In this document: positions 10,136 to 40,695 of the stretch, in pieces
Layout: each line of letters starts with the position of its first letter
How positions within the stretch are numbered: the stretch's first letter is position 1
Source of the DNA: Mytilus trossulus
Taxonomy: Eukaryota
Direction of reading: 5' to 3'
NCBI RefSeq assembly: GCF_036588685.1
Contig: NC_086379.1
Span: 7,192,001-7,256,000, forward strand
DNA length: 64,000 bases
Notes under the pieces: generated by a model
What the model was told of the DNA's origin: nothing
The model's input: only the letters and a program-made list of their open reading frames with translations
Databases searched by the model: none
Position numbers and translations under genes: made by a program

Positions 10136-10495
10136 TAATAATTACATTAGATGTAAGTTTCATTATAATACGTTATTCTAATTGGCTAACATGTTATTCC
10201 GTAAACAATTGCATCCGACAATAACATTTATCATGCATAATGACACGAGGTCCCACAAAAAAGTGCACAGGTGAATTAAATAAAACTGGATAAAAATCGT
10301 GTTTTCATGATTTTAGCTAAAAAAATGTAATTATATTAAGTATTGAATACTTCTTTTTGAAACTTTATAGGGTTGTAAAAGCGTTGACCGTGCGTACCTT
10401 TTTAGAATGAAGCGTTTCCGCGCTTCATACAAAATGTAATTCGGTCAACGCTTTTACCACCCAATAAATTTACAAAAAGAAGCATTCAATTCTTA
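10136..10495. mobile_element. Non-autonomous element with one-ended palindrome (family A; palindrome-only copy at ~38390-38552)
   Basis: Palindrome ~10336-10495; TAATTACATT/AATGTAATTA inverted pair at ~10139 and ~10324. Confidence 0.65.
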
Positions 10496-12027
10496 AATAA
10501 AGAAATACGGCGAAAACTACGGCAGATTGTAAAATAGATTGAATACAAAACTCGAATGATGTCGTTAGATATGAAATAGTCAAAAACATTCTTCGGTTTT
10601 CAAAGTGTATTCAGACCTGAAATAATACACAATGTATGGTTAACTGATGTAATTTACTGCAACATAAGAGTGTTACATATTTAGAGTTAGAGATGAGGAC
10701 GTTTTCTATCTTTTTGATATAACATAAATTAAAGTATAGCACACTACACGGGAAACATATTATTGAGAAAGCTCAGGTGTTTAACATTTTACTTTTGTTT
10801 TCATTTATTGTCTAAAAGAAATGCACTAACAAACAACCGTGTTCTCAGATCATATCTATACATCTTATTGATTTGTTTTGATTCATATTCAAAAGAAGCA
10901 TACATCAATGTATGATCCGTTCATCCTATTTCGACTCTTTAAAATTCAAGAGTTTGTTTTGAATTGAGATAAATTAAAATGTATATGGCCTTCAAAATAC
11001 CATTTCGATCCCTTACATCAGTGAAGAGACATTAGTTATCAAAATCCGGATATGGTGTACAAATCTTTGCACCATGTTTGCGGTATACCATCTTCTCCGC
11101 AAATTGAAATTAAAATCGTCAAGCTATCTGTATTAAAAGCTTAATTTTATATTTTACAGTTTACAAGTTAACAAATTAAAAATATTCCGGTAAAAGCTAC
11201 TTCACTATATCCTTCCTTGTAAACTGCTATTGTACATCTGATAACTGAAAAGTGATTACCAGTGTCATATTTGCAACCAATAAGAAAACTATGAATACTT
11301 TTTCATAACATGCCAATACTTTCAAAATTTGTAGTCAAATTAATACTTGACAAAATAAAAATTGGGACACATATTATCACTTTCAAAAATCTAATACTTT
11401 TGATATAAAACATATGATAAAAACTACTATGACATCAATCTGTTTCTGAGTGTATTAATGTTCTTCTATTCATAAACCTACATATGCATCAGAGTATAAA
11501 CAAAAAAAAAATGTTGATGTCTACAGAATTTTTAAGTTAGAATTTCAACAATACTACGATAATATGAACGTTCTTGATAAAGAAATCTAGTAGGTTTTTA
11601 AGTGATGTTTATATAATTACCATGTCTACATTATAAATGTATTTATATTTAATATCATTACACATATCATGTAGAATGACTCATAGGAAATGTTAACAAG
11701 TTTCATGTGTGTGGTTACAAAAGATCAATGTTTACCTGTACAAAAGTCAGCGTGCTTACAGAACATTGACCCTGTACTATCTTATGTCAGACTAGAAATT
11801 CTTTGATATTTTAGAATAAATCATGATGCTTTCTAAAAACTTATCATAAATAAAACAATTGAAATATTTCCCAAACTCACCAGTAGAGACACCTAAATTA
11901 GATAAGACTGAACCTTCTGCTCATCATCAATACACGTGACATTCATTAATCATATCCGATCATCTCAACTTTCACGTGAACTTGTACTGATCAAGGTAAA
12001 TAGGTCAACGATTACACAGGTAAAATA

Positions 12028-12172
12028 GCTACGGATGTTTTACGTCCGTAAACAATCCATAATACGTCCGTTGCTTTTCATCCGTAAAACGTCTGTTAAA
12101 CGTCCGTAATACGGACGTTTAGTACCACGACCATAATACGGATGTTTTGTACCACGGACGTATAACGTCTAT
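12028..12172. repeat. Cluster of ACGTCCGT/ACGGACGT motifs in both orientations
   Basis: About eight variants within 145 bp. Confidence 0.7.
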
Positions 12173-12198
12173 TATTATTATGCATTATAATATATTAT

Positions 12199-12340
12199 GG
12201 TATTATTGCGTAACAATTTTCATATTGGCTTAGTTATAGGTCCGAGGGTACCATATTGGCCTGAGGCGAAGCCGAATGCCAATATGGCTGCCCGAGGACC
12301 TATAACTAAGCCAATATGAAAATTGTTACGCAATGATACC
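12199..12340. repeat. Long terminal palindrome (~62-bp arms) with central GGCGAAGCC mini-hairpin
   Basis: Arms 12199-12260 and 12278-12340 are near-perfect reverse complements. Confidence 0.95.
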
Positions 12341-12562
12341 TTTATTAATTAACCAGTCCAATATGAACTCTAGCCGGGCCAATATGAAGATTGAAAAAAG
12401 TGTGAAAATCTGACATTCAGGACTTCAATAGTAGTGATTTGAATATGTATCAATGAAAATTGAGGATTTTAATCAAAACAATAAAATAGTAACAATTTTA
12501 TTAAATAATCAACAGTAAATAAACACAACAAGTAAAAAACATGTTTTTATCTAGTTTTCAGA

Positions 12563-15024
12563 TTAAAGCTCTTGGCTGCAGTTTATAGTATTCTTTCTTT
12601 CCCCTGAGTATATGTTAATATTGAAAACACCACCTGTTATAGTTGCACCTGCAAACATGGCCATTGGGTTGTCATGTTTGTTAGCAGTTTGATTATTTGT
12701 ATTTGATACATTTGCATTTAAATTATTATGAACTAATGTATTTGAGTTTGAAAGTTCACAAGGTTCCTCTGAATCTGATGTCGTCTGTAAATCTGAGTTC
12801 GGCAACATGACCTTAGATATTGTGTGAGAAGCTTGTTGCTGTTGTTCAATAGACGGTACTGAATAATGAGTTAAGGTACTAATGCCTTTCCAGCCTCCTA
12901 ATTGAGCAACTTCATTGGCAGGTCTACCATTTTGAAGTAGTGTGGTAGCAAAAGTTTTACGTCCCGAATGATTAACCTTTCTTCCTTGAAGATCTCCTTT
13001 TTCTGCCATATTTTTTACCATTTTACCTAATTTATCTTTGCCTATGGTTTTGCGAGTGTACCATATTTCCTCATGTTTATTATCTAAAGGCCTCAAATAA
13101 AATCTATGTTCATCAGTTAATGTGTCTTGAGGTCTATGCCGTTTGTATTCCTTGTAAACATGAATAGGGCAATTACTTCCTCCTTCCCCGAAAATCTTTG
13201 GCGTAATATCCCGGAAATCCCTGCTTTTTGCTCCACTACGGGTTTTGGTGCTTCTTTCTGAAAAAAGTATGCTTATGTCAATATTTAAAGAAGAATTATC
13301 CTTCCTGTCTGTACAAAACTTTCACTTTTATATAACAAAAAACATGTATTGCATAGTAAATAAGATTTGTTTTGATAAATATAAAACAATGGTTAATATC
13401 CTTAAAAGCACAAATTACCAACTTTTGTCAGGACTGTTGTACATGTACATCCATTATCCACAGAAGTATATATTCTGTGATTTCTAAAAGATTAAAAATA
13501 GCAACTATTTAAATGATGGAAATCATAACATAATCTCACCATTAAATTCCAAATACTCCTTTCCATCAGATGTAGCTTTTAACTTGACATCTCCCCATGT
13601 CATGTTAACATGGTCTTGTCGACCTCGTAGACCAAAGTATGTTGCATTATTTAAAAACACAGCATTCAGTAATGCATCAGGGTTTTCTGGAAAAAGAAAA
13701 AAAAAGAACTTAACTAAAATACATGTATCTTAATGTAAATATCCAACTTAAAATAGTATTTAAAGGACAAATACTGTATCAAAATGCAAAAGACCTCTGG
13801 AGACACTCTCATTGTTCAAGACCTTATGTGTATTTTAAACATTTTCTATTAGAACAACCATTTAATAATCAGGGATGGATAGAGGGCGACAAGGAAATAA
13901 AATAATTTGTTTGCCACAAGGTTAGAAAAATGTTTAATTAAAAGTTACTGACTGACACGCTGGAATACAACATTTTTTTAAACTTACGTGTTCCAATAAT
14001 TCCTTTCTCCCTCAAGATTTGGATTTCCTCAGTCGTCAAAGGTTCAGCTCTGTTTGGCTTACTGCCCTTGCCCAATGACTTTAATGCCTTTCGCTTCGCT
14101 TCTAATACCCGTCTTGTGTGGTTGAACTCAGGATCCTTTTTAATACTGAAACATTAAAGAAAAGATATGCATAATATCTGACATGTAATTTTTGTATGTA
14201 CATGTTTTATACTTATAGCAAAGAGAAACCAAGGAATATTCATTGTACACAAGCTTAAGATCATCAAAACCACATTGACCCAGATGATATATATAGTTTT
14301 TACCAAAAAAAATGACACAAGGCTAAAATTAAAATATTGGCACTGAATATTCGAGTCATAATGCTTGACAGAATAATGCAAAGGCTATCATGCTATATCA
14401 AGACAAGGGAGTTACATGTCTCACAGATATCAAATAATCTACATGAAAATAATCGTACCTTATACTACTTTTTGAGTCCTTCAAATGTCTATCCAAGCTG
14501 TTGAACATAGAGGATAAAGAGTCAGGCTCATATTCGTCACCATTTTTCTTCAGGACTCCAAGAAAAAATCTTGATAACAGACTGTCCAAGTCTTTGGCAG
14601 GTATTTCCACTGAATCACGCATTTCTCCAACAGATATGAAAAAATCCAGCATCACTTTCAAGTCACTCTTTGTTTTAGTTTTTGTGTTCTTGTTAACACT
14701 TAAAGCTAGAAAAGAGTCAGTGTCTTCATCAGTGACAGAGCGAAACCTCTTGCTACTCGAGCTATTTTCTTTGTCTGATTCGTCAATCTCATGATTCTGT
14801 GCATTTTCAATGTCCTGCAGAATTTCATTTGGGAAGTTGAAATTCGCTGAATCAACTTCTTCCAGAATCAAATTTCCTTCCCCATTGACATCCGCAAGAT
14901 TTCTCTTGATGTACTCTGCCTCCCTATTAGATAAATCGTCGTAGTGAAAATAGTCTTCAACTAACGCATCCATCGCATCATCTATATTTTGTATAGAGCT
15001 ATTGCTCCATCGTTTTGTTGTCAT
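12563..15024 (-). CDS. Crypton-type (DUF3504/ZMYM-QRICH1-like) tyrosine recombinase, 521 aa; exons 15024-14459, 14145-13988, 13686-13540, 13257-12563
   Basis: GT-AG splicing gives a 1566-nt open frame. Motifs: YEPDSL, LEAKRKALKSLGKG..AEPLT, FGLRG (R), STKTR (K), CPI..Y, FYLRP, NHSGR (HxxR), GGW, THY (Y). Confidence 0.9.
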
Positions 15025-15418
15025 TTTCTCCTGTCAGACGACACTAGCCGTAGTTCTCTAGAGTTATCGGGATTTCAACCGATTAGTCTAGAGCTAATCG
15101 AATATGCTAATATTGGGCTTGCTACACCCGGGCCAATACGGAAAAATCCGTATTGGCCTTATAGGACAAAATTATCGATTTGGCAGTTTTACTCGTATTT
15201 AGTCAAATAAGCTCCAGTTAATTAATAATATATATTACAGTATCTAATACACTTATTGTAGAATATATAACACACTTATTATAGTATATAGTATAGTTTG
15301 ATTTGTATGTAACAGTTGCATTGTATTGCTGAGACTTTTGATGGAACTGTCAATGACAAAATGCTTTTCTTTATTTTAAGGTGATGATACTTTTTATCTA
15401 CATTTCCTTATATAGTAT

Positions 15419-40397: not shown

Positions 40398-40695
40398 CAA
40401 GGAATGACTGTAATATTTTTCTGTCTATGAGGAAATAACATAAAAAAATTGGTGCACACTGAATAACGCGCGTAACAGTGTGTACAACATTTTTTTTAAT
40501 GTTATTTCGAATAGACAGACAAAATATTACCATAATTTTTTTATAATTTAATTCTAAATTCCATTTAAAACCGTAGAAAACCATGAAAAAACGTTGATGA
40601 CGCCACGGTCACATGACTAAATTATGTCTTAATGGCCTCATAACAAAATAATGTCCGCCAATCAGAAGACGCGTTACATCCAAAATTAAATTATT
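40398..40695. mobile_element. Non-autonomous element with one-ended palindrome (family B)
   Basis: Palindrome ~40400-40540; ATAATTTAATT / AATTAAATTAT inverted pair at ~40543 and ~40684. Confidence 0.6.

Follow-up and report, generated by a model that had tools for sequence, protein, structure and literature searches.

The analysis of a 64,000-nucleotide stretch of the Mytilus trossulus genome (NC_086379.1, positions 7,192,001 to 7,256,000, forward strand; hereafter the window) has identified a young, probably still active tyrosine-recombinase (Crypton) transposon, with a long palindrome at one end. The joining of the two ends in an inferred circle would complete a hairpin-forming palindrome of about 170 bp, which is the layout of an integron gene cassette. 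This gives a testable idea of how these poorly understood eukaryotic transposons move. The element, named here F1, occupies positions 12196-15228 (3033 bp), begins with TATGG and ends with GTTAATTAATAA, and carries its recombinase gene on the minus strand. A total of 16 right ends and 15 left ends have been found in the genome, at about 99% identity, with constant limits and unrelated flanks. Paralogous empty sites read ...ATAATATAT/TATATATTA... (the slash marks the point of insertion, here and below the junction), so the insertion is clean and without target duplication. One copy (L007), however, has a 7-bp flanking repeat. The F1b copies (L041, L047-L049) share their left flank and are part of a larger composite repeat, and were therefore not used for the definition of boundaries.

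At the left end lies an imperfect palindrome of 142 bp (12199-12340), for which a repeat search reports outer arms of 61 nt at 89% plus an inner pair, centred on GCGAAGC at 12266-12272. The loop is GAA (12268-12270), tandem G.A mismatches lie at 12244-12245/12294-12295 and 12263-12264/12274-12275, and there is a T.G wobble near the outer end. The palindrome is followed by a T (12341) and by TTATTAATTAAC (12342-12353), here called the twin, whose exact reverse complement is the right terminal 12-mer GTTAATTAATAA at 15217-15228. A single 12-mer pair is not significant alone, since 4 hits with at most one mismatch are present in the window against 2.9 expected, but its position at the ends of the element is reproduced in every copy. 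The joining of the ends would extend the palindrome by 12 bp.

The observation made in an earlier note, that a 142-bp palindrome at one end of a tyrosine-recombinase transposon is followed by a sequence complementary to its joined ends, is confirmed in all its parts. Some corrections are nevertheless needed. The note placed the element at 12190-15237, whereas the copies and the paralogous empty sites set its limits at 12196-15228. Furthermore, the joined ends would read GTTAATTAATAA/TATGGTATTATTGC (with more of the right end, ...CCAGTTAATTAATAA/TATGGTATTATTGC...), that is three bases (TAT) where the internal sequence has one, plus one T/C difference, and the internal sequence is therefore an imperfect complement of the junction. 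The possibility that the palindrome is an independent insertion (a foldback or MITE-like element) or an assembly artefact, with chance pairing of the 12-mers, has been rejected. Although three copies have a partly deleted palindrome, it lies inside the shared limits of every full copy, the empty sites lack it, all 15 left arms in the genome are preceded by TATGGTA and then by unrelated flanks, and it is conserved together with the 12-mer pair in four families. None of the conditions that the note had set against its own proposal was fulfilled.

The only coding capacity of the element is a recombinase gene of four exons, and no other open reading frame of 100 or more residues is present. In profile searches of the separate exons, exon 4 (12563-13258, minus strand), which encodes the C-terminal catalytic part (HxxR, W, Y) and the stop codon, matched Pfam DUF3504 at 37.8 bits and Phage_integrase at 31.9 bits, both above their cut-offs. 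Its HSGR, W and final Y align to the H-x-x-R, H and Y of XerA (5hxy); W replaces the second His, as in Cre. Exon 3 (13541-13686, minus), with splice sites read from the sequence, holds the first catalytic Arg, read from the motif FGLRGRQ, and matched DUF3504 at 25 bits, below the cut-off. Exon 2 lies at 13989-14147 (minus), and exon 1 (14462-15024, minus) encodes the N-terminal part with a QRICH1-like domain (PF25561 at 25.4 bits, below the cut-off). All exon pieces are open in at least 6 of 14 copies. Further recombinase genes have been found in Mytilus californianus, Mercenaria mercenaria, Mactra, Tegillarca and Porites.

The layout is shared by three relatives: the non-autonomous families F2 (0.8-1.5 kb, at least 40 copies) and F4 (354 and 604 bp), and a full-length metagenome Crypton, M1, with 46% protein identity in exon 4 and the same exon 2. 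Two unrelated short repeat families in the window have the same layout. For the repeat families A and B, and for further F2 copies, only coordinates were used. Between F1 and F2, 12-13 of about 65 stem pairs differ by double compensatory changes, with few one-sided changes. The twin is conserved in F2; it has changed together with the terminal 12-mer in F4 (3 positions) and in M1, where the match is 23 bp. F1, F2 and M1 all keep the T.G wobble, the two tandem G.A mismatches and the GAA loop, all of them on the strand antisense to the gene, and the junction arm is never a perfect complement of the twin at the crossover point. These conserved mismatches could instead be four direct CCGAGG protein-binding motifs in duplex DNA. 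Nearest-neighbour energies favour the proposed strand by only 1-3 kcal/mol in F1, F2, A, B and M1, while F4 goes the opposite way. Another relative at 45% identity (L054) shows no clear palindrome, having only a weak inverted repeat (z = -1.6). The tandem pairs of family A looked like arrays at first, but their upstream unit ends inside its distal arm and they were not counted as support.

The predicted junctions of F1, F2 and F4 all read [T]TAATAA-N7-TTATT. In F1 this is a core-type site, with inverted half-sites TTAATAA (contained in the right terminal 12-mer) and TTATTGC around the 7-bp donor spacer TATGGTA (12196-12202), whose first three bases have only a single T opposite them in the twin; the spacer is TATGATA in F2 and TATAGTG in F4. 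The insertion target is two-fold symmetric, ATAW/TAY NNN WTAT, and the counts in 23 insertions are -4 A 16, -3 T 19, -2 A 20, +8 T 18 and +9 A 19, as expected for a recombinase dimer. The half-site spacing of the donor is one base wider than that of the target consensus. TATGGTA is present at 15 of 15 left junctions and at 0 of 16 right junctions, which argues for the exchange of one strand only. Two-strand exchange across a non-identical spacer should give both kinds equally, and for 16 independent right junctions the observed outcome has a chance of about 2^-16. The heterologous joints F1/F4 and F4/F1/F4 fall exactly at AATAA/TATRG. No circle junction or excision footprint was seen in the assembly, without sequencing reads. 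The exact F1/F1 tandem (circle-type) junction does not exist there, and a search for the F2-type junction gave one hit with one mismatch, the same number as the reversed control.

The explanation favoured here, with moderate confidence, is that F1 is an autonomous animal Crypton excised as a circle by its own tyrosine recombinase. In this view the circle junction would be the core-type site and also the outer part of one arm of the palindrome of about 170 bp, the other arm being its imperfect complement, which the earlier note called the internal junction. Integration would cut only the junction arm, always between AATAA and TAT, so that in the chromosome the outer 12 bp of the arm lie 3 kb away, at the far end. 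The targets would be AT-rich symmetric pseudo-sites or the ends of resident relatives. Only the strand written as plus in the window would be exchanged, and the intermediate would then be finished by replication or repair. The palindrome most likely works in folded form, as a hairpin on single-stranded DNA or as a cruciform. In the integrated state the twin could pair with the distant right end while the hairpin stem brings in the left end, placing the two cut sites side by side for excision; in effect the element would work like an integron gene cassette that carries its own integrase. The element limits, the absence of target duplication, the layout, the covariation, the target logo, the one-sided junctions and an intact recombinase gene are established by the analysis, whereas the circle, the folding, the single-strand exchange and the recombinase as the acting enzyme are inferred. 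No single-stranded stage is known for any eukaryotic Crypton.

The interpretation offered in the note is supported in part. The identification of an element without reverse transcriptase and with a Crypton tyrosine recombinase, and of an internal sequence complementary to the two joined ends, is supported, and this complementarity is maintained by compensatory change across F1, F2, F4 and M1. The proposal of two inverted att sites, one of them split on integration, is not supported. The internal twin has a shorter spacer (A versus TAT), conserved in F1, F2 and F4, and is never used as a boundary in any copy, so it is a partner strand or site and not a second crossover site. The alternative proposal of the note, folding of single-stranded DNA, is supported indirectly but not shown, by the conserved non-Watson-Crick features on one strand, the irregularity exactly at the crossover point and the strictly one-sided junctions.

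A conventional duplex reaction is less likely but remains possible. Here the circle junction core would recombine with the target as ordinary double-stranded DNA, and the palindrome arms, with their CCAATA and CCGAGG motifs, would be only accessory protein-binding arms, like lambda attP arms or res sites. The donor junction and the target logo both look like ordinary core sites with two half-sites, and, as far as is known, all characterised eukaryotic tyrosine recombinases act on duplex DNA. Repeated motifs lie in both arms and at both ends. Six copies of GGCCAATATG-like motifs are located within 12221-12386, two per palindrome arm (12221 and 12252 on the minus strand; 12277 and 12309 on the plus strand) and two just inside (12356 and 12377), and they are candidate recombinase or CCAAT-factor binding sites. 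The motif search gave 9 hits against 3.2 expected, 8 of them in the element ends. The equivalent motif is CCAATACAG in F2 and F4, and GGCCAATAT in M1. However, the duplex reaction does not explain the covariation of stem positions, including those between the motifs, the co-variation of the terminal 12-mer with the twin, or the one-sided junctions.

Compared to published Cryptons, and in particular to the animal CryptonA type (with KIAA1958/QRICH1/DUF3504-related recombinases), F1 shares a single intron-containing tyrosine recombinase with DUF3504 and Phage_integrase domains, the absence of a reverse transcriptase, DDE transposase or Rep and of target duplication, a low copy number, non-autonomous derivatives, and the TATGG terminus reported for most CryptonS elements (PMC3212892). 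The published descriptions give only short terminal direct repeats, and no terminal repeats for animal Cryptons (PMC3212892, PMC8969392). In contrast, F1 has a 142-bp terminal palindrome and an asymmetric terminal inverted repeat (12 bp in F1, within a range of 12-23 bp), without a terminal direct repeat; its left end is TATGG and its right end ...AATAA. The flank next to the left end is ATAA or ATAT in about 14 of 22 insertions, but this is a target preference and not a fixed repeat. The present layout is not described in the Crypton literature that was found, although close analogues exist in other systems, which bears on the suggestion of the note that the mechanism might be distinct and undescribed.

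The first analogue is the integron attC site, with the CTX-phage attP(+) site used by XerCD. The circle of an integron cassette carries an imperfect palindrome with paired outer and inner boxes and unpaired bases at and near the crossover, which lies in the outer box of one arm, so the integrated unit starts with the outer box and ends with the rest of the palindrome. F1 has this arrangement, as deduced from its copies and the predicted junction, together with an implied one-strand exchange and exact heterologous head-to-tail joints, but the resemblance is one of design only. F1 encodes a Crypton-type recombinase rather than IntI or Xer, the gene lies inside the element, the stem is much longer, the targets are dispersed AT-rich pseudo-sites and not one attI, and the folding and single-strandedness are by analogy. 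In IS200/IS605 (IS608) elements there are also subterminal imperfect hairpins, and base pairing between an internal guide and the cleavage sites brings the ends together on one strand; IS608, however, is bacterial, uses an HUH Y1 transposase and has hairpins at both ends.

The second analogue is found in Helitron2/Helentron elements and their non-autonomous HINE/DINE-1 derivatives. Their asymmetric terminal inverted repeats (ATIRs) of 8-15 bp sit 0-2 bp from the 5' end and immediately upstream of a 3' hairpin, the subTIRs are often themselves palindromic, target duplications are absent, compensatory changes keep the pairing and short derivatives are abundant (PMC3627910, PMC4067079). F1 has this layout, and in gene orientation it begins with T. 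It could be considered a rolling-circle element moved in trans by a Rep/helicase, with the recombinase gene as a captured passenger, but this is very unlikely. No Rep/helicase is present in F1 or M1, no long element with F1-like ends exists in the genome (all 16 right ends belong to F1 or to its 0.86-kb derivatives), and the recombinase and the layout stay together down to 46% protein identity. Insertion is not at T/TT but at the symmetric target, where the base before the gene-side end is mostly A. The hairpin stem is about 70 bp, against 5-10 bp in Helentrons, and the hairpin is 7-10 times longer and reaches the very end of the element; the TATGG termini are a Crypton trait (PMC3212892).

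The analogy with DIRS1 drawn in the note is only formal. DIRS1 has an internal sequence complementary to the two joined termini and a related recombinase, but it is a retroelement with long inverted terminal repeats, and its internal region is thought to act during reverse transcription. A templated joining of this type during reverse transcription of an RNA copy has been rejected for F1. There is no reverse transcriptase or other open reading frame, the copies retain their introns, and the palindrome, of which the complement is simply the other arm, lies downstream of the likely polyadenylation signal.

Crypton transposition is not known to have been reconstituted, and reviews describe the ends as nearly featureless. 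In F1 the presumed cis-acting parts (the junction core, the twin, the long hairpin with conserved irregularities, and the target logo) are sharply defined and several copies look intact, so the mechanism becomes directly testable. A more far-reaching reading, which is tentative, is that a lineage of animal Cryptons transposes through folded single-stranded or cruciform DNA, the recombinase recognising a long imperfect hairpin whose base is completed by the two element ends, exchanging one strand only and leaving the rest to replication. This would be a eukaryotic counterpart of integron attC/CTX recombination, extending recombination on folded DNA by integrase-type tyrosine recombinases from bacteria to animals. 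It would show convergence with the end design of Helitron2 and IS608, offer a plausible precursor of the DIRS1 internal complementary region, and may also account for the mobilisation of thousands of short one-ended-palindrome repeats in bivalve genomes. The layout also gives a structural signature for the annotation of Cryptons and their non-autonomous derivatives in these genomes. A small palindrome made of two inverted GGCCAATACG motifs is additionally present at 15126-15160, about 70-100 bp from the right end of F1 and upstream of the start codon, and a similar inverted pair sits at the same relative place in M1 (L053:1652-1710).

The analysis of the region identified all of the structural elements described in the earlier note, namely (i) an imperfect palindrome at 12199-12340, centred on GCGAAGC; (ii) a T followed by TTATTAATTAAC at 12342-12353, directly behind the palindrome; and (iii) the reverse complement of the latter, GTTAATTAATAA, at 15217-15228. 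Between them, a four-exon gene is located on the minus strand, with approximate exons at 15024-14462, 14147-13989, 13686-13541 and 13258-12563. The exons were searched one by one, not as a joined protein, and the pieces match the QRICH1 domain, DUF3504 and Phage_integrase, exon 4 scoring above both curated cut-offs. Exon 4 aligns to XerA across H-x-x-R ... Y, with Trp at the position of the second His. The nearest protein relative is from Mytilus edulis, at 96% identity. A metagenome contig of 1.9 kb (ENA, ERZ887851 NODE-45735; L052) carries exon 4 of the element at 100% protein identity, and is presumably mussel DNA in an environmental or host-associated sample.

The element, designated F1, is represented in the 1.3-Gb genome by 16 right ends and 15 left ends, at about 99% identity. 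All copies start at TATGGTATTATTGC and end at GTTAATTAATAA, with unrelated flanks. The window copy is inserted in another dispersed repeat (11990-12195 and 15229-15340), rich in ACGTCCGTA-like units, of which many copies elsewhere lack the insertion and served as empty sites. These empty paralogues read ...ATAATATAT|TATATATTA..., and the insertion is therefore clean, without target duplication, which places the element at 12196-15228. A single F1 copy (L007, G000:C17:4601520-4604546) is flanked by a 7-bp direct repeat, AAGTGTT, whereas all other copies lack any duplication. Three copies have a partly deleted palindrome, and two internally deleted derivatives of 0.86 kb keep about 170 bp at the left and about 180 bp at the right. 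Two F1 copies (L002/L012, G000:C27:2142955-2148995) lie in tandem, joined by about 40 bp of filler made of two short internal pieces of the element; the downstream copy has only half a palindrome, and the arrangement looks like a repair scar. All four exon pieces are open in the window copy and in five others, out of 14 examined. The family is young and may still be active.

The layout is conserved and co-varies among related families. The non-autonomous family F2 (0.8-1.5 kb, at least 40 scored copies) begins TATGATATTATTACG and possesses a palindrome 77% identical to that of F1, with the same internal complementary 12-mer (the twin) and the same right end. Between F1 and F2, 12-13 of about 65 stem pairs differ by double compensatory changes, and only a handful differ on one side. 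The third family, F4 (354 and 604 bp), begins TATAG; its terminal 12-mer is ATCATTTAATAA and its twin is TTATTAAATGAT, which makes three compensatory changes relative to F1. M1, a full-length Crypton on a JGI metagenome contig (L053), shows 46% identity in exon 4 and the same exon layout. It carries a 142-bp palindrome (-69.6 kcal/mol, z = -19), and two bases upstream of that palindrome there is a 23-bp exact complement of its other end.

The hairpins of F1, F2 and M1 also share characteristic imperfections: a T.G wobble near the outer end, two tandem G.A mismatches (CCGAGG on both arms in the same direction) and a GAA loop. All of these appear on the strand antisense to the gene; on the other strand they would be C.A, C.T/T.C and a TTC loop. 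At the crossover point the junction arm is never a perfect complement of the twin, and reads TAT against a single base in F1, F2 and F4. These features argue for selection on a folded strand, although they could also be directional protein-binding motifs in duplex DNA, and energy calculations do not separate the strands clearly, with F4 disagreeing. In some F1 copies (L009, L015, L012 and L014) the GA of the right-arm CCGAGG reads TC, which turns the tandem G.A mismatch into Watson-Crick pairs, as if one arm had been corrected against the other.

The predicted junctions of F1, F2 and F4 all read [T]TAATAA, a 7-bp spacer (TATGGTA, TATGATA and TATAGTG, respectively) and TTATT, which is a canonical tyrosine-recombinase core. 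Twenty-three insertion sites give a two-fold symmetric logo, ATAW|TAY NNN WTAT, with counts of 19/23 for T at -3, 20/23 for A at -2, 18/23 for T at +8 and 19/23 for A at +9. This is what a recombinase dimer would select, not an HUH enzyme. The donor spacer is present at 15 of 15 left junctions and at 0 of 16 right junctions. Exchange of both strands across a non-identical spacer should leave it at either side with equal chance; the result therefore points to exchange of one strand at a single position, completed by replication or repair. F1 also abuts F4 exactly at AATAA|TATRG, in F1|F4 and F4|F1|F4 arrangements, as expected if the ends of resident relatives are the best targets.

No terminal repeats were found in animal Cryptons by Kojima and Jurka, who also noted that most CryptonS elements share TATGG termini (PMC3212892), and a 2022 curation guide lists only a short direct repeat as the Crypton hallmark (PMC8969392). 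A literature search for Cryptons with a palindrome or hairpin, which did not extend to Repbase and Dfam, found no description of the present layout. The same geometry has, however, been published for Helitron2 and Helentrons: a terminal inverted repeat whose inner copy lies just before a 3' hairpin, with no duplication (PMC3627910, PMC4067079). An origin as such an element is considered unlikely, as there is no Rep/helicase in F1 or M1, no long partner in the genome shares these ends, the recombinase and the layout stay together to 46% identity, and the target is symmetric rather than T/TT. The nearest functional analogue is the integron cassette with its attC site. The observation made in the earlier note, of ends matched by an internal complementary sequence, is confirmed. 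Its interpretation is partly supported: the “splint” proposed there is the uncut arm of a palindrome that the inferred circle would complete. While the element limits, the layout with its covariation, the target logo and the one-sided junctions are seen directly in the sequences, the folded, one-strand mechanism is inferred from them, and remains the best-supported reading.

The one-ended palindrome with a terminal complement is also found in two unrelated short repeats of the window, families A and B, each with thousands of candidate copies. Family A (10138-10500) is about 363 bp long, with more than 3000 first-look candidates at about 97% identity; a palindrome of about 165 bp lies at one end, next to a 10-bp complement of the other end, and no ORF is present. 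Family B (40399-40695) is about 297 bp long, with more than 2800 candidates at about 87% identity; it has a 132-bp palindrome at one end and an 11-bp complement of the far end a few bases beyond it, with a 12-13-nt unmatched stretch at the would-be junction. At two loci (G000:C14:7024185-7024878 and G000:C1:84474909-84475578) family A units lie in tandem with a diverged unit (88% and 77% identity), whose alignment stops inside its distal palindrome arm, where the next unit begins. A palindrome 90% identical to that of F1 (F1b, beginning TATAG) lies near the end of a larger repeat of at least 3.7 kb (L048:602-4318, L049, L041 and L047), which carries unrelated ORF fragments and is therefore a composite.
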